From the NCBI GenBank assembly GCA_002269645.1, contig NIVC01002285.1, positions 62,001 to 126,000 of the forward strand: a stretch of 64,000 nt of DNA, read 5' to 3'. Numbering within the stretch: position 1 is the first letter of the stretch; each line of letters begins with the position of its first letter. A program made the position numbers and the translations under genes. Of the stretch, positions 7,162 to 50,764 are shown piece by piece. The notes under the pieces are model-generated. The model was not told the DNA's origin. It ran no database searches and saw nothing but the letters and a program-made list of their open reading frames with translations. This stretch comes from Macrostomum lignano (Eukaryota).

Positions 7162-9428
7162 ATGCAGCAGGGACAGCGTCTTCTAGCCAGTCTGGGGCAT
7201 CGATGCAACAATCTGCTTCTGCCCGGCTCGCCGCTTGCCACTTGCCTGCCGCTCGTCATTGACGGGCACAGACTGGGCCTGGTGAAACCCGACATCGCCA
7301 GAATCCTCACCGCCAGGTGCCCATCTGTCTTCCACTACGGCTCCGGCGGCCGCTCCCTGACGCTGGCCGATGGTCTGTCTGGCTTTCGCCCGGTTAGCAA
7401 CGCCATGGCAACGGCATTTGAGCAGCTCAGAACTGACGGAGTTTTTCCCTGCCTGACTAAGGGCTGGCGAAATGAGCTGTACGCTGCCAGGCTGCGGTCT
7501 ACCAGACAGCCTGTCTTTGAGGTGCGGACAGCTGGGATGTGACTGGACTTGGGAAATGCCCAGCATCTGGCTTTACCACCGCAGGTATGCCAGGCCGAGT
7601 CTTGAGACTGACCTCTGTCCACTGGCATGGCCTCCCCAGTCTACTGACATCCCAGTCTACTGACATCCCAGTCTACTGACATCCCAGTCTACCGACACCC
7701 ATTCTACTGACACCCCAGTCTACTGACACCCCAGTCTACTGACACCCCAGTCTACCGACACCCATTCTACTGACATCCCAGCCCATGGCCACCCCAGTGT
7801 ACTGACACCCCAGTCTACTGACACCCCAGCCTACTGACACCCCAGCCTACTGACATCCCAGTCTACTGACACCCTAGTCTACTGACATCCCAGCCCATGG
7901 CCACCCCAGTGTACTGACACCCCAGTCTACTGACACCCCAGTCTACTGACACCCCAGCCTACTGACATGCCAGTCTACTGACACCCCAGTCTACTGACAT
8001 CCCAGTCTACTGACACCCCAGTCTACTGACACCCCAGTCTACTGACACCCCAGTCTACCGACACCCATTCTACTGACATCCCAGCCCATGGCCACCCCAG
8101 TGTACTGACACCCCAGCCTACTGACATCCCAGTCTACTGACACCCTAGTCTACTGACATCCCAGCCCATGGCCACCCCAGTGTACTGACACCCCAGTCTA
8201 CTGACATCCCAGTCTACTGACATCCCAGTCTACTGACATGCCAGTCTACTGACACCCCAGTCTACTGACATCCCAGTCTACTGACATCCCAGTGTACTGA
8301 CGTCCCAGTGTACTGACACCCCAGTCTACTGACACCCCAGTCTACTGACATCCCAGTGTACTGACACCCCAGTCTACTGACATGCCAGTCTACTGACAAC
8401 CCAGTCTACTGACACCCCAGTCTACCGACACCCATTCTACTGACATCCCAGCCCATGGCCACCCCAGTGTACTGACACCCCAGCCTACTGACATCCCAGT
8501 CTACTGACATCCCAGTCTACTGACATCCCAGTCTACTGACATGCCAGTGTACTGACACCCCAGTCTACTGACACCCCAGTCTACTGACATCCCAGTGTAC
8601 TGACACCCCAGTCTACTGACATGCCAGTCTACTGACAACCCAGTCTACTGACATCCCAGTCTACTGACATGCCAGTCTACTGACATCCCAGTCTACTGAC
8701 ACCCTAGTCTACTGACATCCCAGTCTACTGACATCCCAGTCTACTGACATCCCAGCCTACTGACATCCCAGTCTACTGACACCCCAGCCCTTGGCCATCC
8801 ATCCCATCCCATGGCCACCCCAGCCCAGCTAACCGGGGTCAAACGATCCTCTCCCGAACAGGTTGAGCGCAGCGCGGCCTCCCTGCTGGGCATCGCGCAG
8901 TGGGGCTGCCACGTGAACGGCTACACAGTGGCAGCGGACGGCAGCCAGCGGCCGGTTGCCATGTGGCTGGCCAGGCGGTCGCTAAGCAAGCCAACGTGGC
9001 CCGGCCACCTGGACAACCTGGTTGGCGGCGGCCTGCCCAGCGACTGCGACTCGCCAACGCTGAACGCCCGCAAGGAGGCCCAGGAGGAGGCGGGCATCCC
9101 GGCCGCGCTGCTGGACAGCCTGCAGCCAGTCGGCACCGTCAGCTACTTCTACGAAGACGAACGCGGCGTATTCCCCGACGTGGAGTACTGCTACGACTTG
9201 GCCCTGCCCGACACCTTCTCGCCTGTTAGCGTCGATGGCGAGGTGGCGGAGTTCCGCCTGGTCCCGCTGGCCGACCTGCCCGAGCTGATCGCTCAGCCGG
9301 ACTTCAAGCCGAACAGCGGCCTGGTGTGCTTGGACTTCCTGCTGCGCCGGGGCTGCCTCAGCCCGGATACGCAGCCGCTGTACGACCTGCTGATGGAGAT
9401 GTGCCATACCCGACTGCCGCTGGACTGA
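7162..9428 (+). CDS. Nudix hydrolase with N-terminal DUF4743 (YJR142W / plant NUDT20-like), 308 aa; exons 7162-7521, 8862-9428
   Basis: Phase-0 intron GAG|GTGCGG ... CTAAC...CCCGAACAG|GTT joins PVFE to VERSAASLLG. Motifs GWRNELY, GCHVNGY, MWLARRS..KPTWPG.LDNLVGGG and the Nudix box variant RKEAQEEAG are present. Confidence 0.92.
7630..8790. repeat. Intronic minisatellite, 16-bp unit CCCAGTCTACTGACAT (Nudix intron)
   Basis: About 70 tandem variant units are directly visible. Confidence 0.95.
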
Positions 9429-14400: not shown

Positions 14401-14516
14401 TAATATTGCGCTTTAGCCAGCCAATGTCCGGGCGATCCAATGCGATGGATTAGGCAGGGATTTAGCCATTCTGTCATTAATCCTGCCTGCCGTTTCCAGC
14501 CTGGCCGGCCTCTCGC

Positions 14517-15800
14517 ATGTCTCCGACCTCGCCAGCCGCCTCCGCCCTCGCGTCCGCCCGACGCCGACTGTCGACGCCGCCGGCCGCTGGACGTCGGTCG
14601 CGGGGCAGCCCGGCAGGAGGCGGCGGCGGAGTTTCCAAGAAACGAAACTCCCTTGGCGGTCCCGGGCCGCACCTGGTGCAGCTGAACCTGGACTTCGGCC
14701 AGAGCAACCTCGGAACGGTCACGTGCTCAGGCTGCGGCATGGTGTACTCGGCCGGCAACCAGGCTGACGCTGTTCGGCACGCGAGGTTTCACGCCAGCCG
14801 GCGGCCGGCTGCTGCGGCGGCAACAGCGGCAGCGTCGGCTGCGTCGGCCAGCGCGTGGCGAGGCCAGCAGGCTGTGAAGGAGTTCTTCAACGGGGACCGG
14901 ATTGTCCGCGTGTCTCCCGGAGCCGGCGGCGGCGTCGGCTGGCAGCGCGCCAAAGAGATCTTCCGCCTGATGGACGAGGAGCTCGGCCAGGGCACCGAGC
15001 CGGATGCCTACAGCGGCATGCTCGTGTTGCTGTACGTTCGGCATCAGGTGAGTTGTAACACCCTGTGCTAGTCTGTAACACCCTTGCTAGCCTGTAACAC
15101 CCTGTGCTAGCCTGTAACACCCTGTCCTAGTTTGTAACACCCTGTGCTAGTCTGTAACACCCTTGCTAGCCTGTAACACCCTGTGCTAGTCTGTAACACC
15201 CTGTGCTAGTTTGTAACACCCTGTGCTAGTCTGTAATACCCTGTGCTAGTCTGTAACACTCTGTGCTAGTTTGTAACACCCTGTGCTAGTTTATAACACC
15301 CTGTGCTAGTTTGTAACACCTTGTACTAGTCTCTAACACCCTGTGCTAGTTTGTAATACCCTGTGCTAGTCTGTAACACCCTGTGCTAGTCTGTAACACC
15401 CTACCATTCCCTGCAACACCCTACCATACCCTGCAACACCCTACCATACCCTGCAACACCCGCCGCCATTTGCAACCTACTCAAGTCGGGCATAGTCGGC
15501 TGCTGCATCGCCGAGCCGATCCGCACCGCCTACCGCCTGCTGCCGCCAGTTGAAGGTGCCGAGGCGGCCACCGAGCGGGACACGGAGCCGCTGCCAGCCC
15601 AGTGCGGCATCCACAAGGTCTGGTGCCAGTCAGGTCACCGCCGGTCCGGCGTGGCCACCGCCCTGCTGGATGCCGCCAGGTCCTGCCTGTACCTGGGCCT
15701 GCAGGTGCCCCTCAGCCTCACCGCCTTCACCGCGCCAACACCCAGCGGCTACCGGCTCGCCTGCCGATACCTGACCACCGACAGGCCATTGGTATACTGA
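14517..15800 (+). CDS. ECO1: Eco1/ESCO-family cohesin N-acetyltransferase, ~281 aa; exons 14517-15047, 15486-15800
   Basis: PIP-like QLNLDFGQ, C2H2 finger CSGCGMVYS....D...HARFH, and acetyltransferase motifs IVGCCIAEPI, CGIHKVW....RRSGVATALLD and AFTAPTPSG...A..Y...LVY*. Phase-0 intron CAG|GTGAGT to TCAAG|TCG. The true N-terminus may extend through an upstream exon (acceptor at 14499). Confidence 0.92.
15055..15460. repeat. Intronic minisatellite, 20-bp unit CTGTAACACCCTGTGCTAGT (ECO1 intron)
   Basis: About 17 units, then 3 units of a derived 20-mer CTACCATACCCTGCAACACC. Confidence 0.93.
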
Positions 15801-19539: not shown

Positions 19540-20345
19540 CCTCCGATATCAGCCTTGGCGCCCACAATACCCGCCTTGGTCTTGGCGCCGCCGATATCAG
19601 CCTTGGCGCTCCCAATATCGGTCTTGTCAATTCGACCTGGACGCCGCGATATCAACCTTGGCGCCCCTAGATTCAACCTTGGCGCCCCTAGATTCAACCT
19701 TGGCACCCTAGATTCGACCTTGGCGCCCCTAGATTCAACCTTGGCGCCCCTAGATTCAACCTTGGCGCCCCTAGATTCAACCTTGGCACCCTAGATTCAA
19801 CCTTGGCACCCTAGATTCAACCTTGGCACCCTAGATTCAACCTTGGCGCCCTTATATTCGACCTTGGCACCCCTAGATTCGACCTTGGCGCCCCTAGATT
19901 CAACCTTGGCACCCTAGATTCAACCTTGGCACCCTAGATTCAACCTTGGCACCCTAGATTCAACCTTGGCGCCCTTATATTCGACCTTGGCACCCCTAGA
20001 TTCGACCTTGGCGCCCCGATATCAACCTTTGCGCCCCGATATCAACCTTGGCGCCCTTATATTCGACCTTGGTGCCCCTAGATTCAACCTTGGCGCCCTT
20101 AGATTCGACCTTGGTGCCCCTAGATTCAACCTTGGCGCCCTTATATTCGACCTTGGCGCCCCTAGATTCAACCTTGGCGCCCCGATATCAACCTTGGCGC
20201 CCCGATATCAACCTTGTCGCCCTTAGATTCGACCTTGGCACCCCTTATCAACCTTGGCGCCCCTAGATTCAACCTTGGCACCCCTAGATTCAACCTTGGC
20301 GCCCCTAGATTCAACCTTGGCGCCCCTAGATCCAATCTTGGCGTC
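19540..20345. repeat. 21-bp minisatellite AACCTTGGCGCCCCTAGATTC
   Basis: About 36 tandem variant units. Confidence 0.93.
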
Positions 20346-21292
20346 CCCGGCATGGCTTCAGTTACAATTTCGGCGCTGTTACACATGTAAAAGCAGGTGG
20401 GTTTGCCCGCCACCCCATTTGCCTTATAAATAAAAGGCTAATAAGCGGCTCAATTAGTCAGCAGGCAAAATAATTTTAGAGAAAATTTGCCAAGTTCGCA
20501 ACAAATTGCAGTTCCAGCCCGTACTCCCCCAAGCAATAACTGCAAAGAAGACTTGGATTTCGGATGGTTTTGCTGGTAGTTGTTGGCCCAATGTGGCCCA
20601 ATAGGCTATTCTATTTATGCAATGCTGTGCCACACTAACTTAACCCCGCCCCGAACCTTAAGTGTTCAGCTTAATGCCTTGCTTCTAGTCGGGTTGTTGG
20701 CGAGGCGGTGGAAAGACAGACAGATTACACTTGGGCATTAAAGGAGGGGTTTAACCCGGCTTGGCGAGACTAAAGCCTTTCTCGTCTGGGGTTCTGTAAT
20801 ATGCAATGTACATAGCTGGGGGAGAGAAGTGTGAGCGTCTGGACCTGCAAAGACCCCAAGCGAAGGACCAGACAGGGGAGTAGGTAGAGAGGAGGGAAGG
20901 AGAAATGTACAGTGGGGCTTCATTTTCAACAGCCCCCCCCTGTCACCCCGCTGTCCGTCCGTCCCCTCTCTCCCCTCGGGGTTGGGCTTGGAGACAAACC
21001 GTTCATGTATAGAATAATGCGGTGGCTTCGGCTATCTTTTTAGCTGACTGCTTTTGATCCTTCAAAGAGTTGTGCTTGCTTGCCCTGTGCCTTCAAGCAA
21101 AGAACTGCCTCTGCCTACCCGGACTGCCCTCAGTCCCGTTTTCCCGCGTTTCTTCTGGCTTTTCGGGCAGCAGGCCGGGACAAAAGCCTCATAAAGCATA
21201 TTTTCCAAGGGGATTCCAGGAAAGCAAGAAGAGGTGCGACGCGGTCTGCTGACTTGCTGCTTTGACAGCCTTCTCTGTGGTGGCTAGCGAGC

Positions 21293-24200
21293 ATGAGGTA
21301 ATTCCTGCGAATATTGCTGCTCCGTACGCTTACGACTTACCTATATTCACAACCCAATGTCAAGCTTGGCGCCCCACATGTCAATATTGACGCCCCACAT
21401 GTCAATCTTGGCGCGCCGCATGTCAATCTTGGCGACCCACATGTCAATATTGGCGCCCCACATGTCAATCTTAGCTCCCCGTGTCAATCTTGGCGCCCTT
21501 ATGTCAATCTTGGCGCTCTCATATCAATATTGACGCCCTCATGCCAGTCTTGGCCCCCTCGTATCAATATTGGCGCCCCACATGTCAATCTTGGCGCCCC
21601 CGTGTCAATCTTGGCGCCCTCATGTCAATATTGGCGCCCTCATGTCAATCTTGGCGCCCTCATGTTAATCTTGGCGCCCTCATGTCAGTCTTGGCCCCCT
21701 CGTATCAATATTGGCGCCCCGTGTCAATCTTGGCGCCCTCATGTCAATCTTGGCGCCCCTCACGTCAATCTTGGCGCTCCTCATATTAATCTTGGCGCTC
21801 TCATGTCTTGGCGCCCTCATGTCAGTCTTGGCGCCCTCGTATCAATATTGGCGCTTCACATTTCAATTTGGCACCCCACATGTCAATCTTGGCGCCCCGT
21901 GTCAATCTTGGCGCCCTTATGTCAATCTTGGCGCCCTCATGTTAATCTTGGCGCCTTCATGTCAGTCTTGGCCCCCTCGTATCAATATTGGCGCGCCACA
22001 TGTCAATCTTGGCGCCCCACGTGTCAATCTTGGCGCCCTCATGTCAATCTTGGCGCTCCTCATATTAATCTTGGCGCCCTCATGTCAGTCTTGGCGCTCC
22101 TCATATCTTGGCGCCCTCATGTCAATCTTGGTGCCCTCATGTCAGTCTTGGCGCCCCCATATCAATCTTGGCGCCCTCATGTCAATCTTGGCGCCCCGCC
22201 CCTCCAGCGACCTGCAGTCCTCGCAGCCGACTTCGTCAACCCGACGTCGAGCAACCCCGCCGGAGCCGCCGACGCCGCTGGAGGCCGCCCTATCGGCTGG
22301 CGCGGCCGACGCCGAGCTGGAACGCCTGCTCGACCGTCGCGATGAATTCGGCGACGACGCCCTGACCGAGGAAGTTGAACGCGCTGACACCGAGGCCGAC
22401 GCCGCCGTTCTGTCGCTGCTGACCCGACCGCGCCTCGCCGAGCGCTGCTGGCAGCCCGCGCTGTTCGCTGCCGCCCGCTGCGGCCGCTCCGGCCTGCTGC
22501 AGCGCCTGCGGGATGCCGACCCCGCCGCCTGGCGCAGGGCGGTTCGCTCAGCGGGTCCTGATGGTCGCCGGGTGCTGCACCACGCTGCCGCAGGCGGAAG
22601 GGTGGAGGCCATGCTTCGGCTTCTGCGGATGCTGCGAATGCATCATCATCAGCAGCAACAGCCGGAAGCTGCGATGGATGACGCCGGCGCCGAGGAAGAA
22701 GCTCCTGATGAGGCTGAGGAAGCTGCGGATGGAGCTGATGAAAAGCGGCGAGCCGAAAAAAATTTAGAGCAGGAGGCGGAGGTGAGTGCGCTGCATCGGC
22801 ATTCGATGGCTACTTGTTGTTGTCGGAAAGGCTGCGGGGTGTCAGGAGAGGTAGCAGGATGTCAGGAGAGGTAGCAGGATGTCAGGAGATGTAGCAGGAT
22901 GTCACGAGAGGTAGTAGGATGTCAGGAGATGTAGCAGGATGTCAAGAGAGGTAGCAGGATGTCATGAGAGGTAGCAGGATGTCAGGAGAGGTAGCAGGAT
23001 GTCAGGAGAGGTAGTATAGGATGTCAGGAGAGGTAGTATAGGATGTCAGGAGAGGTAGCAAGATGTCAGGAGAGGTAGCAGGATGTCAGGAGAGGTAGCA
23101 GGATGTCAGGAGAGGTAGCAGGATGTCAGGAGAGGTAGCAGGATGTCAGGAGAGGTAGTAGGATGTCAGAGGAAAAGATCAGCGCATTTCTACACGCCCT
23201 CAATCCCCAGGCCCTGGACACCGAAGAGGACTTCGCCGAGCTGGTGTACGCGGTGGACTGCCGCGGCCGCACCTTCCTGTCCGAGCTGGCTGACCTGCAC
23301 CCGCAGGCGCTGCCGGAGCTGTGGCCGGCGGAGCTGCCAGGCGGGCTGGCCCGCGTGCTGGAGCTGCTGGACCCGCCGCTGCAGGGCCTGACGGACCTGC
23401 CGGATCGCCAGGCCGCCCTGGAGACGGTGGCCATCGCCCAGGAGCCGGTGAAGCGAATCGTGCGCAGCCTGTCCGACCTGCCAGACGGCGAGCGGTCGGA
23501 CGCGGCGAGGCAGCTGGTGCGGCTGTCGCAGTCGGCCTCGTCGCCGAAGCTGCTGCCGGCGCTACTGCGGCTCGGCCTGGTGCGTCCGGCCGACTGCGAG
23601 CAGAGCTTCGTGCTGGAGCTGGTGAAGGCCGGCTGGCTGACCGCCGCCTCCCAGCTGATGCGCCTGCAGCAGACCCGCCTGGTCGAGACCTGCGTTGCCG
23701 TGGCCGCCGCCTGCGGCTCCGCGCGGCCGCTCGAGCAGCCCCGGCCGCGCCCAGCAGCCACCCCGGGCGGCCTGGCCGCCTCGGCCGGGCGCTGGCTGAA
23801 GAGCGGCGAGCAGGCTGGGGACGACGCCAGCGTGGACAGCGGCGCCAGCAACCGCGAGCGCCTCCGTCGGGAGGCCGTCACTGTGGCGCTGAACGCCCTG
23901 GACGCCGTCTATTCCGGCGCCGACGGGCACTGGAAGGCGCGCGTTCACCGGCACTTCTTCAGCGGTGGAGGCGGCGCCGGCGCCCTGGCACTCGCTGATG
24001 CAGCCCCGGAGCTGCTGGCGGCGCCTGCGCTGGCAGAGTACGCCGACCGGCGCTGGGCGGACGGCCCGGACGCCGCGGCCGGCTGTCTGGGCTTCGGCAG
24101 TCCGGCCGGCGGGCCGCCGCGGTTCTCGCCGAGGACGAAGCACGCGGCCCGCCTGCTGAGCCTCCTGCTGTTCCAGCTGCTGCTGACGGTGCAGGCGGCC

Positions 24201-25166
24201 GTGGGGGCGGGCCCGACCGCGGCCAGATGGTCCGGCCTGGAGACGGTGCTGGTCATCTGGCTGCTGCTGCAGCTGGTGCAGGAGATCGCCAGTCCCGCCT
24301 GGGATGGCGGCTCCGCGCTGCCACCGCTGCCGCCGCTCATCTCCGCGCTGCTGTTGCCGGTGTCAGCCTGCGCTGTCTCAGGCATCGGCCTGATCGTCTG
24401 GGCGGTGGCCAGCGGCGTGCCGGGCCCCGGGGTGCTGCTGGCTGCCAAGATTCTGCTGTGCCTGAGCGCGGCGCTGTGGTCCTGCCGCCTGCTGGCCGCC
24501 CTGCGACCCTGCCGGCTTGCCGGGCTGCCCGTGCAGCAACTCCTGCTGGTGCTTCGGCGGGACTGCTGGCCCATGGCGGCGTCCCTGCTGCCAGGATTCA
24601 CCTTGGGCGCCGCGCCCTTAGTCAGCCTGCTGGTCGCTGTGACCTACGCTGCCTCTTCTCCGGCCTATTCTATTCTAGTTGGCGTCTGCCTGTTCCTGCT
24701 GCTGCTGCTCTGCTGGCTTCTAGGAGCAAGATTCTGCGTCACCCTGGCCGAGGCCGGCGATCTGGCGGTCGGCAGGCAGCGCCGGTGCCGCCTGGCCGCA
24801 GCTGAGGCGCTGACGCCGGCCGGCTGCCTGCCCGCCCCGCTGAACATCGCCTACGCGGTGCCGCAGGCGCTGCTGCTCGGCCGGCGTCTCCGCGACCGCC
24901 TGACCGGCCAGGCCGACGCGGACATCGAGGCCGCAGCCGCGCTCAACCGGCAAGATGTCTATGGCAACGGTTGCCAGGGAGGCGGCGGCGGGGGAGACGT
25001 CGGGGCAGCCTCGGGCCAGCTGCTTCTCGGCGGCGGCACCGGGGGCGGAGGCGGCGGCAGCTGGGGGGCGGCGCACAAGGAGGACCGGCAGTTCCAGCTG
25101 TTCCAAGCCGCTGCGTTTCGCGGAAAGCGGCACAATTTCCAGCGGGCCTGGCCGCCGGCGAGCTAA
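21293..25166 (+). CDS. Highly diverged ankyrin-repeat TRP-channel-like protein (TRPC/TRPN/TRPM-related), ~844 aa; exons 21293-21297, 22208-22781, 23211-25166
   Basis: ATGAG|GTAATT splices in phase to CCTCCAG|C, and GAG|GTGAGT splices in phase 0 to ...CAATCCCCAG|GCC. The spliced length of 2535 nt is a whole number of codons. Ankyrin-like segments TPLEAALSAG, GRRVLHHAAAGG and DCRGRTFL; pre-S1 LLAAPALAEYADRRW and FSPRTKH; six hydrophobic segments; TRP-domain-like RQRRCRL...LPAPLNI. Confidence 0.72.
21360..22197. repeat. Intronic minisatellite, 20-bp unit TGTCAATCTTGGCGCCCTCA (TRP-like intron 1)
   Basis: About 40 tandem units. It shares the CTTGGCGCCC core with the 19540-20345 array. Confidence 0.93.
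22838..23169. repeat. Intronic minisatellite, 20-bp unit GTAGCAGGATGTCAGGAGAG (TRP-like intron 2)
   Basis: About 16 tandem units. Confidence 0.93.
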
Positions 25167-26797: not shown

Positions 26798-27964
26798 TCA
26801 AGTAGGCGAGGAAGGCGCTCTGGCTGGCATGGTACGCCAGGCTCGCCGCGTAAGTCGTCCGAGTTTCTCTGCGATCGTCGACAAGTGCCGGTTTCTCTCA
26901 GTCAGACTCTGGAAAGCCTGCGAGTGGGCAAGGAGCAGGGCTGAGTCGTGCGTGAGGGGTTAATGGCAATGAGGATACCGATGTGAATATGAATATAGCG
27001 ATATTCACCTAGAGACACCGATATTCATCTAGAGACACCGATTTTCATCTAGAGACACCGATTTTCATCTAGAGACACAGATATTCATCTAGAGACACCG
27101 ATTTTCATCTAGAGACGCCGATATTCATCTAGAGACCCCGAAATCTATCTAGAGACACCGATATTCATCTAGAGACACCGATATTCATCTAGAGACACCG
27201 ATATTCATCTAGAGACACCGATTTTCATCTAGAGACACCGATATTCATCTAGAGACACCGATATTCATCTAGAGACACCGATATTCATCTAGAGACACCG
27301 ATTTTCATCTAGAGACACCGATATTCATCTAGAGACACCGATTTTCATCTAGAGACGCCGATATTCATCTAGAGACCCCGAAATCTATCTAGAGACACCG
27401 ATATTCATCTAGAGACACAGATATTCATCTAGAGACACCGATATTCATCTAGAGACACAGATATTCACCTAGAGACACCGATTTTCATCTAGAGACACCG
27501 ATATTCATCTAGAGACACAGATATTCATCTAGAGACACCGATATTCATCTAGAGACACCGATATTCATCTAGAGACACCGATATTCATCTAGAGACACCG
27601 ATTTTCATCTAGAGACACCGATTTTCATCTAGAGACACCGATATTCATCTAGAGACACCGATTTTCATCTAGAGACGCCGATATTCATCTAGAGACCCCG
27701 AAATCTATCTAGAGACACCGATATTCATTTGGAGACGCGATATTCATCTAGAGACACCGACATTAATCTAGAGACCTACAGACGGATTCGAATAGGCAAT
27801 AGCTTCCCCCATAGCAACTAAACAAAGCCGAGTACCTCTTTGAGCCGCTGCTGCCTCTGCTTCTTCTTCAGCCGGCAAAGCCGAGCCGCCTCTCGATTCT
27901 TCTTCCGCCTGGCGTCCTCGGCAGTTTGAGCTGCAGGCGCCACGGCAGCTTGGCAGTGCTTCAT
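26798..27964 (-). CDS. Minimal bZIP protein, 82 aa as written; exons 27964-27836, 26917-26798 (an alternative frame extends to 26706)
   Basis: Basic region RRKKNREAARLCRLKKK. The phase-0 intron GAG|GTACTC ... CACTCGCAG|GCT continues a perfect Leu heptad: LKEAFQS LTERNRH LSTIAEK L. An upstream in-frame extension to 28027 has no ATG. Confidence 0.8.
27005..27775. repeat. Intronic minisatellite, 20-bp unit GATATTCATCTAGAGACACC (mini-bZIP intron)
   Basis: About 38 highly homogeneous units. Confidence 0.95.
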
Positions 27965-28163
27965 CGTTGGTGCAATGTCTGGCTGGTGCACTCTGAGTAA
28001 CAATGACTTTTTATGCCAAACTGACACTCCCCTGCGCTATTGTTGAGCACCTTTGAAAGAAATTTATAAATAGCGATGAAGTAATCTGCAAAGGCCAAAT
28101 ACTTCGTTAATAAAATCATAAGCAAATTAATGATTAACTTAGTAAAGCAATTCAGCAGGAATG

Positions 28164-28170
28164 TGACTCA
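28164..28170. promoter_or_regulatory. AP-1 site TGACTCA about 200 bp upstream of the mini-bZIP ATG
   Basis: Exact TRE consensus; function untested. Confidence 0.35.
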
Positions 28171-29155
28171 GATTCGAAAATAGATTCCATTGTGGCTCAT
28201 GTCTAATTTGTGTTCGTGACGCCCACACAAGTCGTTTAGTTGAAAATACTAGTATGAGCGTACACTAATTTCAACTCACAATCTGTTTGCAAATGCTCGT
28301 ACTGCATGAATAAGGTAAAAAACAAACCAGATAGGCGTCTCTCCAAAACTGTTACCAAATGGCTATTCTGGAACTTTGGCAACAAAATCCAACAAAATGT
28401 GCCATAAACAGTGAACAGTTTTCGTTAGAACAAAATCTCAAGTCGGGGAATTCCCAAAGTGCGAGCAGCATTATATTTTGTGAAGCAAACTGTCAATTGA
28501 AAAGAATCGCCAGTTCAAACTGACCTACTCACAGTAGGCTATAATGTTTATTACATATATTTTGTAGCTCGTACGGCCAGCCGAGCAGTCAGTGTACACT
28601 TCAAAAAGTACACCGAAAACCTGCTTGTTTCTTGTACTGCACTTGGCAAGAGAGAGAGATATGGGGGAGAGAGAGTCCAATGTACATAGACCGCCATATA
28701 GCTCTAACCTGAAGTCTGTGACGCAGTTAAAATCCAGGTGACTAAAAATAGTGAACCCTTCTCACAACAAGCACTCAGCACTGCAGCCGCTCAGGCCCTT
28801 GTTGAGGCCAGACTGGGACTGCTTGAGTACCCAAAAAAAAGATAAAATTCCTAAAGCTCAAAAAGTTCACGTAGTCGATAAGACTGTGAAATTTTAACTA
28901 ATGCGAAACTTCTGAGATAAGGCTTTAACTCAGCTTAAATTAATGATGTATATTTCATAGAATTCGAGCAAGCACAATACCAGGGTTTTGCGTACATGTA
29001 TCACGCATCTTACGAGTAAAAATGCTCCGGGACAAACGAATGCCACCGACAAATGAAAAATAGTACTTTAGTGTATAAAGGATTAAACAGACGCAGTGAA
29101 GATTATGATTCGGTGTCAGTTAGTTAATCTGCAGTGCCATATTGCTCATCTACAA

Positions 29156-29950
29156 TCAGTGCGAAAGCTGCATACACGCCGTCTCCAGCTTCACTGCGGA
29201 CTGCGGCGTCAGCAGAAAGGGCGTCAGGCCGCTGCCGCAACCCCTGGGAGTCGTCAGCGAAGGCAGCTCGGAGTCCGGTGGCGGCGCCGGCTGCAGCGAC
29301 AGACTCGCCGGCCTGCGGGCCTGCGGCGGCTCATGTGGAGTCTGCGGTGTCGGCGGCGCCGCCAGCCAGACAGACGAAGGCGAAGAGGGCGACGAGGAGA
29401 GGAACTGCGAGTCATCGGCGTCCGCGGCCATCGGGCCGGGCAACTGGCAGTGCGCCCGGTGCGACCTCAGCTGCGCCTCCAGCTGGGCCCTGGCAGCGGC
29501 CAGCTCGGCCACCTCTGCCTCCAGGTCCCCGTTGGCCGCCTCCAGATCCCTGACACAGTCGGCCAGCGTCTCCAGCCGGTCCTGACGGCGCTGCCGGCAC
29601 TTGGCAGCCGCGGCCCGGTTCCGCTCGCGCCGCCTGGCCAGACGGTAAGAGTTCAGGCTAGCTGCCGCGGGTCGCGGCGCCTGCTGAGGCGGCACCTGCG
29701 GAGCAACGGCGGCGGCGGAGCTGATGACGACCTCCTGGCTGGCTGGCCAGGCCTGCAGGTCGATGGCAGCGGGGACCATCGCCAGCTGCTGATGCTGGAG
29801 CGGCTGCTGCACTGCCGGGGCGGCCGCCAGCACAATCTGCTGCTGAGGCTCGCGATTCTCCAGATCGTTCGGCGTCTTGGCGATGAGGAACTCGCTGAAG
29901 TAGCCGGTGTCGGTGCGGCGGTGTCGCAGGAACTTCAGACTTTTCACCAT
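29156..29950 (-). CDS. Fos/ATF3-family bZIP transcription factor, 264 aa, single coding exon
   Basis: Perfect Kozak GCCACCATGG. Basic region RRRERNRAAAAKCRQRR, five-heptad zipper ending LRSHRAHC (the Fos/ATF3/JDP2 HxxxC signature), and a Pro/Ser-rich C-terminus. Confidence 0.9.
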   Translation of the reverse strand: MVKSLKFLRHRRTDTGYFSEFLIAKTPNDLENREPQQQIVLAAAPAVQQPLQHQQLAMVPAAIDLQAWPASQEVVISSAAAVAPQVPPQQAPRPAAASLNSYRLARRRERNRAAAAKCRQRRQDRLETLADCVRDLEAANGDLEAEVAELAAARAQLEAQLRSHRAHCQLPGPMAADADDSQFLSSSPSSPSSVWLAAPPTPQTPHEPPQARRPASLSLQPAPPPDSELPSLTTPRGCGSGLTPFLLTPQSAVKLETACMQLSH

Positions 29951-30081
29951 GGTGGCAAGCGGTTGCTTTCAGTCTTCTGTTAGTGTAGCTTTCGCTCTGG
30001 ATTTCCCGGCGTATTCTGCTTGGGCTTGGGGAAAGAGCCTTGAAGATCTTGGCCAGTATTATATAGGGTATTCCCGCTGGC

Positions 30082-30088
30082 TGACTCA
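30082..30088. promoter_or_regulatory. AP-1 site TGACTCA about 130 bp upstream of the Fos-like ATG
   Basis: Exact TRE consensus; a CRE-like TGACGCCA lies near 30233. Confidence 0.35.
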
Positions 30089-30464
30089 TGCTGCTAATTT
30101 TATCCGCTATTTTTAGCGCATGAGCCATGCATGAGCGGGAGAGGAGAGGGCCACGCCAAGCGGAATTCCAAAGTTAGGCAAAGCCGAACGGCTGCTAAAA
30201 TTAGATCGGTCTGCAGCGGTCTTCAGGCCGAGTGACGCCATTGGCGCTCTGGGAGTACAGTTGGAGAGAGAGACAGAATGGACACTTTCGGGTGCTATAT
30301 TTTCTAAGTGCAGCGCTAGCTTTAGTGTGATAGAGAGGCGAATCGGTGCAACTTGGCTTGTTTTGAAGTCGGTACCAAAATTTTCTAAAAATATCTCAGT
30401 AGAAATTTCCATTTCACATAAAGTCGTGAGCGCAACTACATGTACCTCATTTGTCGTGAGCGCT

Positions 30465-31572
30465 ACTACCTCATCTCAGACGCTTCAGTGAGCGCCTCTA
30501 CCTCATCTCAGACGTTTCAGTGAGCGCCTCTACCTCATCTCAGTCGCTTCATTGAGTGCCTAGCTACCTCATCTCAGTCGCTTCAGTGAGCGCCAAGCTA
30601 CCTCCATCTCAGTAGCTTCAGTGAGTGCCTAGCTACCTCATCTCAGTAGCTTCAGTGAGTGCCTAGCTACCTCATCTCAGTAGCTTCAGTGAGCGCCTAG
30701 CTACCTCATCTCAGTAGCTTCAGTGAGTGCCTAGCTACCTCATCTCAGTAGCTTCAGTGAGCGCCTCTACATGTAGCTACCTCATCTCAGTAGCTTCAGT
30801 GAGCGCCTCTACATGTAGCTACCTCATCTCAGTAGCTTCAGTGAGTGCCTAGCTACCTCATCTCAGTAGCTTCAGTGAGCGCCTCTACATGTAGCTACCT
30901 CATTTCAGTAGCTTCAGTGAGCGCCTCTACATGTAGCTACCTCATCTCAGTAGCTTCAGTGAGTGCCTAGCTACCTCATCTCAGTAGCTTCAGTGAGCGC
31001 CTCTACATGTAGCTACCTCATCTCAGTAGCTTCAGTGAGCGCCTCTACATGTAGCTACCTCATCTCAGTAGCTTCAGTGAGTGCCTAGCTACCTCATCTC
31101 AGTAGCTTCAGTGAGCGCCTCTACATGTAGCTACCTCATTTCAGTAGCTTCAGTGAGCGCCTCTACATGTAGCTACCTCATCTCAGTAGCTTCAGTGAGT
31201 GCCTAGCTACCTCATCTCAGTAGCCTCAGTGAGTGCCTAGCTACCTCATCTCAGTAGCTTCAGTGAGCGCCTAGCTACCTCATCTCAGTAGCTTCAGTGA
31301 GTTGCCTAGCTACCTCATCTCAGTAGCTTCAGTGAGTGCCTAGCTACCTTATCTCAGTAGCTTCAGTGAGCGCCTAGCTACCTCATCTCAGTAGCTTCGG
31401 TGAACGCCTAGCTACCTCATCTCAGTAGCTTCAGTGAGCGCCTAGCTACCTCCATCTCAGTAGCTTCAGTGAGTGCCTAGCTACCTCATCTCAGTAGCTT
31501 CAGTGAGCGCCTCTACATGTAGCTACCTCATCTCATTCGCTTCAGTGAGCGCCTAGCTACCTCATCTCAGTC
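30465..31572. repeat. 34/42-bp minisatellite GCTACCTCATCTCAGTAGCTTCAGTGAGCGCCTA
   Basis: About 30 tandem units with two length variants and an internal AGCTAC/GTAGCT inverted repeat. Confidence 0.94.
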
Positions 31573-31849
31573 GTGAGCGCCCCTGGTTACACAGCTGCGA
31601 GGTTTAGCATTGATCGTCGTGGCATTCTTGTGAATTTTGGTACAACAAAGAAAAAGAGTTTTTAAAGAATAAAAAGCCAATTGTAACAATTAAACTACTG
31701 ATCATTAGTAGTGTTGAACGGTTTTTAAGAACAATAAAACTAACACGCGAATGCATTGAGCGGGTTTATTAAACAGTAGTTAGCGCATATTGCAGAGTTG
31801 AGAAAATGCAGGAGTTAAAAAAGTCAATCAATCACTCAGCTGCCAAAGG

Positions 31850-33711
31850 TCAATCCTTCTCTGGCACGCCAGCAAGCTGGGTGAGAAAGCGCCATTCCTC
31901 ATCGCTGACTGGCTGCACAGAGAGCCTGGGGCAGGTGCACAGTGCCAGGTTGCGCAGCGGCCCGCCGGACTGCTTGTGCGCCAGGTGCAGCTCGCGCAGC
32001 TCCGCCAGGGGCAGCGGCCGCGGCAGCTCCGACTCGAATTTCACGTCGACAGCGAACCAGCGCGGATTGGACGGCTGGGAGGCTGCGTCGAAGTGCGCCC
32101 GTCCGGGTTCGAACTGGGTCGGGTCCGGGTAGCCGCGGCTGAGGGGCGGATTCCGGTTGGATGGGGCGGACTCCGGTTGGATGGGGCGGATTCTAGATGG
32201 ATGCAGCTGAGGGGGGGCGGATTCTAGATGGATGCAGCTGGGGGGGGGCGGATTCCAGTTGGATGCAGCTGAGGGGCGGATTCCAACTGGATGCAGCTGA
32301 GAGTGGGGGGGCGGATTCTAGATAGATGCAGCTGAGGGGGGGATTCTAGATATATGCAGTTGAGGGGGGCGGATTCCAACTGGATGCAGTTGAGGGGGTG
32401 GATTTCAGTTGGATGCAGCTGAGGGGGGCGGATTCCAGCTGAATTCAGCTGAGAGTGGGGGCGGATTCTAGATATATGCAGTTGAGGGGGGCGGATTTTA
32501 GATGGATGCAGCTGAGGGGGGCGGATTCCAGTTGGATGCAGCTGGTGCAGCTGAGGGGGCGGATTTTAGCTGGATTCAGCTGAGGAGGGGCGGATTCTAG
32601 ATGGATGCAGTTGAGGGGGCGGATTTTAGCTGGATTCAGCTGAGGAGGGGCGGATTCTAGATGGATGCAGTTGAGGGGGCGGATTTTAGCTGGATTCAGC
32701 TGAGGAGGGGCGGATTCTAGATGGATGGAGCTGAGGAGGGGCGCATTCTAGATGGATGCAGTTGAGGGGGGCGGATCCTAGATGGATGCAGCTGAGGAGG
32801 GGCGGATTCTAGATAGATGCAGCTGAGGGGGCGGATTTTAGCTGGATTCAGCTGAGGAGGGGCGGATTCTAGATAGATGCAGCTGAGGGGGCGGATTTTA
32901 GCTGGATGCAGCTGAGGGGGGCGGATTCTAGATGGATGCAGCTGAGGAGGGGCGGATTCTAGATGGATGCAGTTGAGGGGGCGGATTTTAGCTGGATTCA
33001 GCTGAGGAGGGGCGGATTCTAGATGGATGGAGCTGAGGAGGGGCGCATTCTAGATGGATGCAGTTGAGGGGGGCGGATCCTAGATGGATGCAGCTGAGGA
33101 GGGGCGGATTCTAGATAGATGCAGCTGAGGGGGCGGATTTTAGCTGGATTCAGCTGAGGAGGGGCGGATTCTAGATAGATGCAGCTGAGGGGGGCGGATT
33201 CTAGATGGATGCAGCTGAGGGGGGCGGATTCTAGATGGATGCAGCTGAGGGGGGCGGATTCCAGTTGGATGCAGCTGGAGGGGGGCGGATTCCAGTTGGA
33301 TGCAGCTTGAGGGGGGATTCTGCAATCACAAAAGCAGGCTACTCACCTAACAATACGGGAAATGCCAACAATGCCAGGCTGCTTGCAGTTGCTGTGGTAG
33401 AAGAAGGCCAGGTGGCCTGGCTGCATGCTGTCACGCAGGAAATTCCTGGCCTGGTAGTTCCTGACACCGTCCCAGACGGCTGTGCCATCGGGCTGCTGCC
33501 TGAGATCGTCAAGGCTGAACTTCATCTCCTCGCCATTGGCCTCGATGCGGCTCTCTGGCTCGGATTTGATCAGCCAGCGCTGCCAGGCTGCGGCCGCCTG
33601 CACTGGCTTGGCTTTGGCCGGCTTCTTCACTGCCAACTGTGCAGCTGATTGCTGCTTCTGCTTGCTGCTGCTTTTTATTGGCTGCCGCCGCCTCTTTGAT
33701 TTGCCCGCCAT
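31850..33711 (-). CDS. THYN1: Thymocyte nuclear protein 1 (EVE domain), 217 aa; exons 33711-33347, 32138-31850
   Basis: Motifs WLIKSEPESR, WDGVRNYQARNFLRD, AFFYHSNCKQPGIVG, YPDPTQF, PRWFAVDVKF and RLSVQPV..EEW. Phase-2 intron AG|GTGAGT ... CCCCTCAG|C. AATAAA on the minus strand at 31770-31765. Confidence 0.96.
32140..33315. repeat. Intronic minisatellite, ~30-bp unit GCGGATTCTAGATGGATGCAGCTGAGGGGG (THYN1 intron)
   Basis: About 39 tandem variant units. Confidence 0.94.
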
Positions 33712-38415: not shown

Positions 38416-39200
<785 letters not shown>

Positions 39201-40809: not shown

Positions 40810-42087
40810 GTCACAGAGCTCATTTGTAGGTCACATTTCTCCTGGTGGAACAATGTTGCTTGAAGCAGGTGGACGTCCTGCTGGCATTTTGTCCTTGCTG
40901 AAATGCGTTTTTACGTGTCAAATATTTTAGAGCGGTAAACTGGAAGATCGCCCTTCGTACGTCTACATGTATACGGACAGGCGTGCCTACGAGCATATAG
41001 CGTGCCTATATGCGCGCTACAGATGATATACAAAGTAAAAGTACAGCATTTTATATGTAATGTAAGGGTCTGCATCAACTTGACAGATCCGACAGTCAGC
41101 CTACATTGACGTGGCTTATTGAATCAAGTAATCTCTTTACGAAAGGGCGTTCTCAAAGCAGACTTGAGGCTGATTCTCGTCCAAATCCAAGCGGCTTTTC
41201 AGCTCGCAAGAGTAACCCACTTAAGAGGGTTTTTCACAAAGCGAAACTTTAAAAAGACAAATACAGCAGAAAAAATGAGTGCTTTGCAGTTCGTGAAAAA
41301 TCAAGAACCCGTCTATGATTGTTTACGCATAGATAGCGGAGCGGAGAAGGCAAAAAAGTTTTTTCTGACGTCTGCACGCGCGTGCCTTCTTGCCGTTCTT
41401 CGCGCACTTCATTAGCAATTCGACCATCGTTAGGGAGGTCAAACAAGAAGAAGATTTCGATTGTAGACAGCATGAGACCCTTTGATCCTCATGAGATTTT
41501 TATCCTCAGATTGCTCTGTACTGACTGTAGCTGTCTGCAGTGTCTGCCTTCATTTCTGCTGATATTGATTTGTCTTACAGTGTCTGCAAGCACGGATCCA
41601 GCCTGCACTGCACCGTTCAAAGGCACACGCCCCAGACACAGCTAGTATTGGCGGTATTGCTGATGAAAAATGATCAAAGCAAGCGACTTCAGCTGTCCTG
41701 TCAGATTAATTTGCATGCTCAAGCATGCTGTTTGATTCCTACTACTGCAGCAACGTGAAAGATATCGGCAGTGTCAGGCGGAATAAGAGTTCGGCGGAAT
41801 TCTCCTGGCCTCAGCAGATAAGACTCCGGGCCAGCATCCATCTGCATTTCACATCAAAGGCGACACTTGGGACAGCCAATGAAATTACATGTTGCAACGC
41901 AGACATACGAGTGCGAGCATCAAGTGGAAAGCAGCCGTTGAGATCTTCAGCTCGTGCTCAGACGTTCGCGTCAGTAATAAGGATAATTTCTTGAGAGGCC
42001 GATCGCGTGATTACTCCCAGGCTTGATCGCCTCGGGAGGCGTCGCAGAGTCTTGGGTAAGCCGAGCGCTTGTTGAAAAATTTGTTCA

Positions 42088-43941
42088 TGCAAAAGATGTA
42101 CCGGTATGTAACCAATGCAACCATCTTCACCGTTGCTCATGCTAAAGATGTACCGGTATGTAACCAATGCAACCATCTTCACCGTTGCTCATGCTAAAGA
42201 TGTACCGGTATGTAACCAATGCAACCATCTTCACCGTTGCTCATGCTAAAGATGTACCGGTATTTAACCAATGCAACCATCTTCACCATTGCTCATGCTA
42301 AAGATGTACCGGTATTTAACCAATGCAACCATCTTCACCGTTGCTCATGCTAAAGATGTACCGGTATGTAACCAATGCAACCATCTTCACCGTTGCTCAT
42401 GCTAAATATGTACCGGTATGTAACCAATGCAACCATCTTCACCGTTGCTCATGCTAAAGATGTACCGGTATGTAACCAATGCAACCATCTTCACCATTGC
42501 TCATGCAAAAGATGTACCGGTATGTAACCAATGCAACCATCTTCACCGTTGCTCATGCTAAATATGTACCGGTATGTAACCAATGCAACCATCTTAACCG
42601 TTGCTCATGCTAAAGATGTACCGGTATGTAACCAATGCAACCATCTTAACCGTTGCTCATGCAAAAGATGTACCGGTATGTAACCAATGCAACCATCTTC
42701 ACCGTTGCTCATGCTAAAGATGTACCGGTATGTAACCAATGCAACCATCTTCACCGTTGCTCATGCTAAAGATGTACCGGTATTTAACCAATGCAACCAT
42801 CTTCACCATTGCTCATGCTAAAGATGTACCGGTATGTAACCAATGCAACCATCTTCACCGTTGCTCATGCTAAAGATGTACCGGTATGTAACCAATGCAA
42901 CCATCTTCACCGTTGCTCATGCTAAAGATGTACCGGTATGTAACCAATGCAACCATCTTCACCGTTGCTCATGCTAAAGATGTACCGGTATGTAACCAAT
43001 GCAACCATTTTCACCGTTGCTCATGCTAAATATGTACCGGTATGTAACCAATGCAACCATCTTCACCGTTGCTCATGCTAAAGATGTACCGGTATTTAAC
43101 CAATGCAACCATCTTCACCGTTGCTCATGCTAAAGATGTACCGGTATGTAACCAATGCAACCATCTTCACCGTTGCTCATGCTAAAGATGTACCGGTATT
43201 TAACCAATGCAACCATCTTCACCGTTGCTCATGCTAAAGATGTACCGGTATGTAACCAATGCAACCATCTTCACCGTTGCTCATGCTAAATATGTACCGG
43301 TATGTAACCAATGCAACCATCTTCACCGTTGCTCATGCTAAATATGTACCGGTATGTAACCAATGCAACCATCTTCACCGTTGCTCATGCTAAAGATGTA
43401 CCGGTATGTAACCAATGCAACCATCTTCACCGTTGCTCATGCTAAAGATGTACCGGTATGTAACCAATGCAACCATCTTCACCGTTGCTCATGCTAAAGA
43501 TGTACCGGTATGTAACCAATGCAACCATCTTCACCGTTGCTCATGCTAAAGATGTACCGGTATTTAACCAATGCAACCATCTTCACCGTTGCTCATGCTA
43601 AAGATGTACCGGTATGTAACCAATGCAACCATCTTCACCGTTGCTCATGCTAAAGATGTACCGGTATGTAACCAATGCAACCATCTTCACCGTTGCTCAT
43701 GCTAAAGATGTACCGGTATGTAACCAATGCAACCATCTTCACCGTTGCTCATGCTAAAGATGTACCGGTATTTAACCAATGCAACCATCTTCACCGTTGC
43801 TCATGCTAAAGATGTACCGGTATGTAACCAATGCAACCATCTTCACCGTTGCTCATGCTAAAGATGTACCGGTATGTAACCAATGCAACCATCACCGTTG
43901 CTCATGCTAAAGATGTACCGGTATTTAACCAATGCAACCAA
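42088..43941. repeat. 52-bp tandem repeat, about 35 very homogeneous copies
   Basis: Unit AAAGATGTACCGGTATGTAACCAATGCAACCATCTTCACCGTTGCTCATGCT, head to tail with no spacers. Confidence 0.97.
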
Positions 43942-48494: not shown

Positions 48495-50060
48495 GCCCAC
48501 TCTACCATGTCCCACTCTACCCTGTCCCCACTCTACCCTGTCCCCACTCTACCCTGTCCCACTCTACCCTGTCCCCACTCTACCCTGTCCCACTCTACCC
48601 TGTCCCCACTCTACCCTGTCCCACTCTACCCTGTCCCCACTCTACCCTGTCCCACTCTACCCTGTCTCCACTCTACCCTGTCCCCACTCTACCCTGTCCC
48701 ACTCTACCCTGTCCCCACTCTACCCTGTCCCCACTCTACCCTGTCCCCACTCTACCCTGTCCCACTCTACCCTGTCCCCACTCTACCCTGTCCCACTCTA
48801 CCCTGTCCCCACTCTACCCTGTCCCCACTCTACCCTGTCCCCACTCTACCCTGTCCCACTCTTCCCTGCGCCACTCTACCCTGTCCCCACTCCACCCTGT
48901 CCCCACTCTACCCTGCCCCACTCTTCCCTGCGCCACTCTACCCTGTCCCCACTCCACCCTGTCCCCACTCTACCCTGCCCCACTCTTCCCTGCGCCACTC
49001 TACCCTGTCCCCACTCCACTCTGTCCCCACTCTACCCTGTCCCCACTCTACCCTGTCTCCACTCTACCCTGTCCCACTCTACCCTGTCCCACTCTACCCT
49101 GTCCCCACTCTACCCTGTCCCCACTCTACCCTGTCCCCACTCCACTCTGTCCCCACTCTACCCTGTCCCACTCTACCCTGTCCCCACTCTACCCTGTCCC
49201 ACTCTACCCTGTCCCCACTCTACCCTGTCCCCACTCTACCCTGTCCCCACTCTACCCTGTCCCACTCTTCCCTGCGCCACTCTACCCTGTCCCCACTCCA
49301 CCCTGTCCCCACTCTACCCTGCCCCACTCTTCCCTGCGCCACTCTACCCTGTCCCCACTCCACTCTGTCCCCACTCTACCCTGTCCCCACTCTACCCTGT
49401 CTCCACTCTACCCTGTCCCCACTCTACCCTGTCCCACTCTACCCTGTCCCCACTCTACCCTGTCCCCACTCTACCCTGTCCCCACTCTACCCTGTCCCCA
49501 CTCCACTCTGTCCCCACTCTACCCTGTCCCACTCTACCCTGTCCCCACTCTACCCTGCCCCACTCTACCCTGTCCCCACTCTACCCTGTCCCCACTCTAC
49601 CCTGTCCCCACTCTACCCTGTCCCCACTCTACCCTGTCCCCACTCTACCCTGTCCCCACTCTACCCTGTCCCCACTCTACCCTGTCCCACTCTTCCCTGC
49701 GCCACTCTACCCTGTCCCCACTCTACCCTGTCCCCACTCTACCCTGTCCCCACTCTACCCTGTCCCCACTCTACCCTGTCCCCACTCTACCCTGTCCCCA
49801 CTCTACCCTGTCCCCACTCTACCCTGTCCCCACTCTACCCTGTCCCCACTCTACCCTGTCCCCACTCTACCCTGTCCCCACTCCACTCTGTCCCCACTCT
49901 ACCCTGTCCCCACTCTACCCTGTCCCACTCTTCCCTGCGCCACTCTACCCTGTCCCCACTCCACCCTGTCCCCACTCTACCCTGCCCCACTCTTCCCTGC
50001 GCCACTCTACCCTGTCCCCACTCCACTCTGTCCCCACTCTACCCTGTCCCCACTCTACCC
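48495..50060. repeat. 15/16-bp C-rich minisatellite CCCCACTCTACCCTGT
   Basis: About 100 units. They explain the 628-aa and 524-aa HSTLSPLYPVP ORFs. Confidence 0.96.
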
Positions 50061-50764
50061 TCCTATCACTCTACCTTATAGAAATAAATTCCAATCTACG
50101 CAAGGCGTCTCCAAGCTGAGGTTTACTGGAATTTAGCTCAGGACACCCCAGATGAGCAGGATAAAGGAAAAAGAAAAAGTAATTTCTGTAATTTGCAAGG
50201 CCAATCCGCATGTCGAACGGAGATTCACTTTAGCATCTTCTGTTTGCAGTCCTGTCACTCTTGTGTGTGACAGGGTTGAGCAAGATCTACAGAAGTTTTC
50301 ACTCACCGTCAAGAACACAGCAATCCGTCATGATGCGGCTGAGTTCGAGGCTTAGCTTACCTAATTAAGGCCGCAGAGATGCTGTCGCAAAATGCTGTTT
50401 TGCGGCTCAAAATTTTAGCCAGGCTTACAGATCCAAAGACCACATCAAAAGAAATGACCAACGAGCTCTATTTAATTCCTAATTGAATGTATAACAGACT
50501 GACAGGTGGCCAAATTTTGCCAAATTTTATGTATTGGCCTCAATCTTCGGATTAGCCCATCCTTTCACTACCTTTCTTAGGTATAGTACCTTAGATCCTA
50601 TCCCACATTCACGCTGATTTGAGGCTGAAAGGAGCGGGAGGCCCAGCAAGATTATGAGTATGAGCTCCTTTGTTCAAAATCACTGAAATGAACTCCACTC
50701 CCATGTCTCGTGACGCCCCCAATTGTCCCCATTACTAGACCGTACACCCACCTCATTTTAATAG

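Follow-up and report, generated by a model that had tools for sequence, protein, structure and literature searches.

In P-loop channels such as the TRPs, the re-entrant loop constitutes the conduction pathway. Polycystin-1 (PKD1) has a TRP-like domain of six helices whose pore region is defective, and in the 1:3 PKD1–PKD2 complex it joins intact TRP subunits rather than building a pore itself; the pore-less short TRPM isoforms TRPM2-S and MLSN-S (TRPM1) are able to inhibit full-length channels. To our knowledge, a separate full-length gene that retains the transmembrane helices S1–S6 and the TRP region, and that has cleanly lost the loop alone, has rarely if ever been described. Here we analyzed a candidate for such a gene, BOX15_Mlig027838g1 of the flatworm Macrostomum lignano (PAA59227.1; 844 amino acids (aa); protein A, P0001), whose coding sequence (CDS) spans positions 21293–25166 of the window, that is, of the 64,000-nucleotide (nt) stretch at positions 62,001–126,000 of contig NIVC01002285.1 (forward strand; assembly GCA_002269645.1). 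The gene is very probably derived from a TRPM channel and devoid of a pore loop. With moderate confidence, we regard it as a transcribed TRPM-type paralogue, known so far from M. lignano alone, in which the loop was lost in frame and which would encode a non-conducting, channel-shaped subunit. PKD1 belongs to an unrelated TRP subfamily (TRPP), and its long S5–S6 region and very large extracellular N-terminus set it apart from Mlig027838; TRPM2-S and MLSN-S are splice or truncation products, whereas Mlig027838 is a gene of its own in which S5, S6 and the TRP region are retained. A literature search found no report of the Mlig027838 identifier and no paper on pore-less TRP paralogues.

The length of the S5–S6 linker was measured between two anchors that are invariant in the paralogues and the TRPMs, namely the Asp at the start of S5 (in 'RRD' or 'MIDM') and the 'LL(I/G)A' motif of S6. 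These anchors are 51 aa apart in both genomic copies of Mlig027838, compared with 104 aa in its paralogue B, 106 aa in paralogue C, 104 aa in TRPM1, 99 aa in TRPM3, and 108 aa in zebrafish TRPM2. The distance from the S6 anchor to the LPxP motif downstream is 37 aa in all of these proteins except paralogue B (38 aa). Fifty-one residues correspond to two membrane helices plus a turn of 4–10 residues, leaving no space for a turret, a pore helix, and a selectivity filter. A first-pass annotation of this DNA, made from the sequence alone, had counted about 10 residues between the S5-like and S6-like helices (TYAASSPAYS, aa 671–680, window 24642–24671) and had proposed that the pore loop is absent, which is borne out by the anchor distances (51 aa against 99–108 aa). 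When the segment from S6 to LPxP was aligned with that of paralogue C without gaps, the score was reached by one of 300 shuffles (z = 5.1), and the comparison with paralogue B gave z = 7.0; the same permutation test run directly against TRPM1 was not significant (z = 0.6).

It is extremely improbable that the short linker is an artefact of annotation or assembly, with a pore-coding exon or segment of the real gene having escaped the assembly or the gene model. Such an error could be suspected given the many repeats and the redundancy of the Mlig_3_7 assembly (PMC5730564) and the intron of paralogue C exactly at the boundary of S5 and the pore loop. However, S5, the turn, and S6 of Mlig027838 are contiguous in one genomic open reading frame (ORF) with no gap and no run of N, and an uninterrupted coding stretch cannot hide an exon; hence no exon is missing between S5 and S6. 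The second copy of the gene, Mlig027838g2 (P0002), located on the independent contig NIVC01002360.1 (10001–13952), has the same short loop and is identical in this region, which excludes a one-off deletion in the assembly, and the gene model itself derives from transcripts. On these grounds the artefact was rejected, as was a missing pore exon at about 24600–24670, a point that the first-pass annotation had wished to see checked. The two copies, g1 and g2, are 99.8% identical in the CDS and 99.7–100% identical in the non-repeat flanks. With four differences only and flanks that are equally similar, they represent alleles or a very recent duplication, and a near-identical copy is in line with the redundancy that has been reported for the DV1 assembly (PMC5730564).

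The CDS of Mlig027838 is joined from three coding exons on the forward strand (Table 1), and its translation equals PAA59227.1. As the GenBank annotation of the assembly was built from a genome-guided RNA-seq transcriptome (StringTie/TACO/TBONE/TransDecoder) (PMC5730564), the exon structure, including the first coding exon of 5 nt, reflects transcripts, and the gene is transcribed. Exon 3 is an intact ORF of 1956 nt with no internal stop, compared with 3–18 stops in the other five frames and ~15 expected by chance at this GC content according to our own estimate. The CDS has a GC content of 73% (0.79, 0.55, and 0.84 at the first, second, and third codon positions (GC1/2/3), respectively), the introns have 53%, and the flanks 43–51%; the CDS thus shows clear coding periodicity.

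Six hydrophobic segments are found in Mlig027838, at aa 505–529, 535–557, 562–590, 595–625, 648–672, and 677–705. Basic residues flank the predicted cytoplasmic sides of these helices in accordance with the positive-inside rule, as read from the sequence, and the helices are also present in a low-confidence AlphaFold model. The S1–S4-like helices and the S4–S5 linker (RLAGLPVQQLLLVLRRD, aa 628–644) described in the first-pass annotation are located where it had placed them, as are LCWLLGAR in S6, VGRQR in the TRP box, and the surviving LPAPLNI, and the intact ORF of 1956 nt with GC-rich third codon positions that it had reported is exon 3 (no stop; GC3, 0.84). The gate motif of S6 (LLxNLLIA) and the Trp-bearing TRP box 1 (of the WKFQR type) are both absent from Mlig027838, while the Pro-rich TRP box 2 (LPAPLN) is retained at the spacing found in TRPM1/2/3 and paralogue C. 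Mlig027838 resembles the TRPMs (TRPM2, TRPM4, TRPM8, and TRPM1/3) in the six-helix layout, the 'G...D' of the S4–S5 linker, and the position of TRP box 2 at a spacing of 37 residues, but differs from them in lacking the pore helix, the filter, the Cys-loop, the S6 Asn, the TRP-box Trp, the 'WNxxD' of S3, and the SLOG/MHR1-2 region. The conserved C-terminal helix may serve as an assembly helix.

The assignment of Mlig027838 to the TRPM channels relies on a chain of homology that passes through paralogue C (Mlig011463g1, P0007). When 1.84 billion representative proteins were scanned exhaustively with HMMER, only four relatives of Mlig027838 were retrieved, all from M. lignano, namely two older-assembly versions of the gene itself, paralogue B, and paralogue C. 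Paralogue C was matched at 28% identity (E, 3.2e-6 over the whole database) from the cytoplasmic domain up to and including S4, and a pairwise BLASTP comparison of A with C gave an E-value of 4e-15 over aa 292–552 (cytoplasmic domain, pre-S1, S1, and S2). Paralogue C in turn matched the solved structures of TRPM1, 3, 4, 5, 2, 7, and 8 with E-values from 3.5e-12 to 1e-5 in the region from pre-S1 to LPPP. Against TRPM2, a profile of the three paralogues gave an E-value of 4e-12, compared with 3e-8 for C alone, and the E-value for TRPM8 was improved as well; A and B thus add signal and do not dilute it. All TRP entries listed in the PDB searches with paralogue C and with the family profile are TRPMs, and the other entries listed with the family profile are three designed ankyrin-repeat proteins, which match the repeats at the N-terminus. 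A word-indexed homologue search, swamped by low-complexity words, returned self matches only for Mlig027838 and none for the transmembrane domain of paralogue C. Altogether, the homology of Mlig027838 to TRPM-type channels, transitive via paralogue C, appears well supported, and the transmembrane domain of paralogue C and of the family profile would be closest to TRPM among the solved structures, TRPS having no solved structure. The TRP paralogue claimed by the first-pass annotation therefore stands as a TRP-derived protein by way of paralogue C, although neither Mlig027838 alone nor together with B has a significant TRP match; as judged from the solved structures, its transmembrane domain would be of the melastatin type, not TRPC or TRPN.

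Paralogue C is located on contig NIVC01001061.1 (6001–9447) and encodes an apparently intact TRPM-like channel of 763 aa, whose N-terminus is ankyrin-like/helical and which lacks a SLOG domain. It carries the pore helix/filter 'LLLAFGE', two Cys residues in a pore loop of 60 residues, 'LINLLIAKF' in S6, 'TWRRYRYQLL', 'LPPPVN', and 'WNLID' in S3. A pair of Cys residues in the pore loop is a feature of TRPMs (PMC13143021). These hallmarks identify paralogue C unmistakably as a melastatin-type TRP channel. In a Foldseek search, even its weak structure model matched TRPM8 (E, 2.5e-5), followed by TRPM3 and TRPC6/3/4. Mlig027838 has the same overall layout as paralogue C, beginning with the ankyrin-like N-terminus and ending with the C-terminal helix, but lacks its pore loop, the two Cys, and the phase-0 intron at the boundary of S5 and the pore.

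The N-terminal region preceding S1 comprises ~490 residues in Mlig027838 and ~380 in paralogue C, and Pfam detected no LSDAT/SLOG (MHR1/2) domain in either protein. The Pfam models Ank_3/4/2 scored 16–21 bits on Mlig027838 against cut-offs of 22–27 bits, with an E-value of 3.5e-4 on the fragment encoded by exon 2, and the three-paralogue profile matched designed ankyrin proteins with an E-value of 1.5e-6, no single stretch passing alone. The GRxxLL and AAAGG motifs in the ankyrin-like region are invariant in the three paralogues. The label 'ankyrin' given in the first-pass annotation is accordingly retained in a weakened form, for the signal of one or two repeats that is weak and below the Pfam cut-offs. 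An ankyrin-like/helical N-terminus on a melastatin-type transmembrane domain, as in paralogue C, is an unusual architecture.

Paralogue B, the closest relative of Mlig027838 (33–37% identity; BLASTP E, 6e-37), corresponds to the C-terminal ~880 aa of UniProt entry A0A1I8FW91 (P0006). The bit score is 136 between A and B, whereas C scores 66 and 32 with A and B, respectively. Common to A, B, and C are the ankyrin-like 'GRxxLL...AAAGG', the helical cytoplasmic domain, the Gln–Glu pair of S2, the Gly of the S4–S5 linker, the Asp of S5, LPxPxN, and the C-terminal helix (RQFQLFQAAAFRG, RQYQLFQAGALRG, and FKLVQAVALRT, respectively). Relative to C and the TRPMs, both A and B have lost the 'WNxxD' of S3 and the Asn of S6. 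The TRP-box Trp is lost in Mlig027838 and kept in B, where it is displaced by one position. The S5–S6 linker of B is of full length but Ser/Thr/Ala-rich, without a recognizable pore helix, and its sequence is not kept. Paralogue B is like Mlig027838 in its degenerate S6 and TRP motifs, the identical LPAPLN, and the ESCO-type neighbour upstream, and unlike it in keeping the anchor spacing of 104 aa and a Trp near TRP box 1. A and B also share LPAPLN(I/L)AYA; since this motif and the C-terminal helix persist in a pore-degenerate paralogue of 33–37% identity, long retention after the loss of pore function is suggested.

Upstream of Mlig027838, an ESCO1/2-type acetyltransferase gene is present at window 14502–15800 (+), and in the old model of A0A1I8FW91, paralogue B is fused to an ESCO paralogue (residues ~740–1050; 49–54% identical). 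Because B also adjoins an ESCO-type acetyltransferase paralogue, an old segmental duplication of the ESCO and TRP-like pair is indicated. The simplest history would then be this duplication, followed by degeneration of the pore in the common ancestor of A and B and then, in A, by complete deletion of the loop. The CDS of paralogue C has a single intron, in phase 0 after Gln556 (Q556) at the S5/pore-loop boundary, a site that coincides within a residue or two with the 5' edge of the deletion in Mlig027838, where an intron is absent. A single deletion may have removed both the intron and the initial ~160 nt of the exon that follows it, or a shift of the acceptor site may have come first, with loss of the intron at a later time. 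In either case, the in-frame loss of ~55 residues would have removed the re-entrant pore loop, leaving a simple hairpin of the helices S5 and S6.

Lacking the pore helix, the selectivity filter, the S6 Asn, and the TRP-box Trp, Mlig027838 would be unable to form a canonical tetrameric cation pore. In structures of TRPM and TRPC channels, the S1–S4 bundle, TRP box 2, and the C-terminal helix include parts that mediate assembly and coupling. Since S1–S4, the Gly and Asp of the S4–S5 linker, TRP box 2, and the C-terminal helix are kept in Mlig027838, its most likely role would be that of a subunit shaped like a channel but non-conducting. Such a subunit could join an intact paralogue and modulate it, or alternatively act alone as a membrane sensor or scaffold; the dominant-negative subunit suggested in the first-pass annotation would likewise be a putative role. 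Conduction by a non-canonical route, either through a wide, filter-less S5–S6 bundle or through S1–S4 as in the proton channel Hv1, is improbable. Voltage-sensor-like domains can conduct alone, Hv1 being a proton channel made of a voltage sensor only, and Mlig027838 retains the S1–S4 bundle with the invariant Gln–Glu pair of S2; however, its S6 consists nearly entirely of Leu, Val, Cys, and Phe, favouring a hydrophobic plug, the acidic and polar residues of S3 are lost, and there is no sign of a polar pathway.

Several results weigh against Mlig027838 being a maintained, TRPM-derived subunit. Pfam searches (Ion_trans included) with the 667-aa ORF and with the whole protein gave nothing but the sub-threshold Ank signals, phmmer found no TRP match among all PDB chains, and a profile of A and B had no PDB match at E <= 10. 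The transmembrane region of A and B was aligned by hhalign with that of C and TRPM1/3 at a probability of 44%. AlphaFold2, supplied with the three-sequence alignment, gave a predicted local distance difference test (pLDDT) score of 43 for Mlig027838 and 50 for paralogue C; the models were used for helix positions only, and that of Mlig027838, the best local pLDDT of which is 67–79 at aa 260–340, is unusable for the pore question. Foldseek matched this model to TRPM4/8/5/2 at non-significant E-values of 0.06–0.5. Paralogue B is known, as a protein sequence alone, from a chimeric model of 3136 aa in an older assembly, and the HMMER scan found no orthologue in other species. Ala, Leu, Gly, Arg, and Pro make up 58% of the residues of Mlig027838, which is an extreme composition, as is the GC content of its CDS, and both this composition and the rapid divergence fit relaxed constraint. 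Finally, g1 and g2 differ at four sites in 2.5 kb, namely two non-synonymous, one synonymous, and one frameshifting indel.

The absence of a direct TRP match in Pfam or the PDB, and the ease with which Leu/Ala-rich helices are aligned, would be compatible with an unrelated, low-complexity membrane protein that has six helices and TRP-like motifs by chance. This is nevertheless very improbable and was rejected. The match to paralogue C is significant database-wide and extends through S4, and paralogue C is itself unambiguously TRPM-like; all elements, including the C-terminal helix, occur in the same order; the spacing of 37 aa between S6 and LPxP is identical, with z = 5.1 for the S6–TRP segment; and the E-values for TRPM2 and TRPM8 are improved by the addition of A and B.

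Alternatively, Mlig027838 could be a decaying relic, in which the pore was lost after duplication and which has since drifted under relaxed constraint, transcribed and open by luck or youth but functionless. We consider this rather unlikely, although the strongly biased, GC-rich composition, the identity of only 28–37% to the paralogues, the loss of nearly all gating motifs (WNxxD of S3, S6 Asn, and TRP-box Trp), and the lack of a detected homologue outside M. lignano all speak for it, as do the differences between the copies. In g2, one G is missing from the poly-Gly (G-run) tract, and the resulting frameshift puts another sequence in place of the C-terminal helix that the paralogues have in common; this reflects either a true disabling mutation of that copy or a homopolymer error of the long-read assembly. 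The two copies are too similar for the ratio of non-synonymous to synonymous substitution rates (dN/dS) between them to be informative about selection. Against a relic stand the ORF of 844 codons, which is intact in spite of the ~15 chance stops estimated in exon 3 alone, the strong codon periodicity, and the maintained spacing of 37 aa from S6 to LPxP. Furthermore, LPAPLN, the Gln–Glu pair of S2, the Gly and Asp of the S4–S5 linker, and the C-terminal helix are shared with the pore-degenerate paralogue B despite ~65% divergence, and the loops follow the positive-inside rule. Beyond the non-conducting subunit that we favour for Mlig027838 itself, it is possible, if doubtful, that Mlig027838 and B together form a small clade of full-length, TRPM-derived pseudo-channels that lost the pore in the distant past but were kept by selection, and that would act as non-conducting partners of the intact Mlig011463 or as stand-alone sensors composed of S1–S4 and the TRP domain.

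Table 1. Features of the Mlig027838 gene in the window, with the corresponding residues of the encoded protein
Feature	Window position	Strand	Residues and remarks
Coding exon 1	21293..21297	+	ATGAG followed by a gt donor; start codon plus 2 bases
Intron 1	21298..22207	+	nearly all a 20-nt minisatellite (21357-22196, ~42 copies)
Coding exon 2	22208..22781	+	aa 2-193; ankyrin-like repeat(s) at ~aa 85-145 (22455-22637), then an acidic low-complexity stretch
Intron 2	22782..23210	+	gtgagt...ccccag; 20-nt minisatellite at 22840-23169
Coding exon 3 (whole)	23211..25166	+	comprises all features listed below
Cytoplasmic helical domain and pre-S1	23211..24143	+	aa 194-504; region of highest conservation with paralogues B and C
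S1-S4 helices	24144..24506	+	aa 505-625; 'QE' pair of S2 invariant across paralogues; 'WNxxD' of S3 (TRPMs and paralogue C) lost
S4-S5 linker and S5	24507..24647	+	to ~aa 672; G631 and D644 invariant, aligned to 'LGP...D' of TRPMs
S5-S6 turn AASSPA	24648..24665	+	aa 673-678; site of the ~55 missing residues (pore helix, filter, Cys-loop)
S6	24666..24746	+	aa 679-705; very Leu-rich; 'LCWLLGARF' in place of 'LINLLIAKF', S6 Asn lost
Degenerate TRP helix, then TRP box 2	24747..24845	+	VGRQRRCRL without Trp (TWRRYRY in paralogue C); LPAPLN kept at 24828-24845
Gly-rich low-complexity tract	24978..25064	+	site of the 1-nt G deletion in copy g2 (window 25063)
C-terminal helix and stop codon	25065..25166	+	AHKEDRQFQLFQAAAFRG...; aligned counterparts are AHRELRQYQLFQAGALRG in B and FKLVQAVALRT in C; helix predicted for aa 812-839

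Around Mlig027838, a Slu7 gene is located upstream, with its end at or before 12815, and the reverse strand downstream (26798–33696) carries an EVE-domain gene and two bZIP genes, of which one is Maf-like. About 30 minisatellite arrays (periods of 12–52 nt, up to 100 copies, 80–97% identity) fill introns and intergenic DNA across the window, for example at 7634–8787, 19652–20348, 21357–22196, 26999–27775, 42081–43940, and 48496–50061, which fits the tandem-repeat content of 15% reported for the M. lignano genome (PMC5730564). The arrays at 19652–20348 and 21357–22196 have a common CTTGGCGCCC core, and the first bZIP gene as well as the EVE-domain gene contain arrays within their spans. Long ORFs over the introns of Mlig027838 (LGAPHVNLGAP..., e.g. 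21314–22345) are translated minisatellite repeats. The segment at 38671–38962 shows 37–54% identity to residues 2084–2182 of A0A1I8FW91, which are situated just downstream of a reverse-transcriptase match (1870–1944) and upstream of the TRP-like part; judging from this position, the segment may be a retroelement fragment. Rfam had no match within the window.

The interest of Mlig027838 would be low if it were just a relic. Were the gene maintained by selection, it would provide a natural experiment on the roles of a non-conducting TRP scaffold, such as assembly, ligand or lipid sensing, and regulation of intact subunits; RNA interference and transgenesis are available in M. lignano (PMC5730564). 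Should the clade of pseudo-channels prove true, it would represent a naturally evolved, separately encoded pore-less TRP subunit. The divergent, ankyrin-headed and SLOG-less TRPM-like lineage in a basal flatworm bears on the evolution of TRPM and TRPS and on the pharmacology of flatworm TRPM channels.

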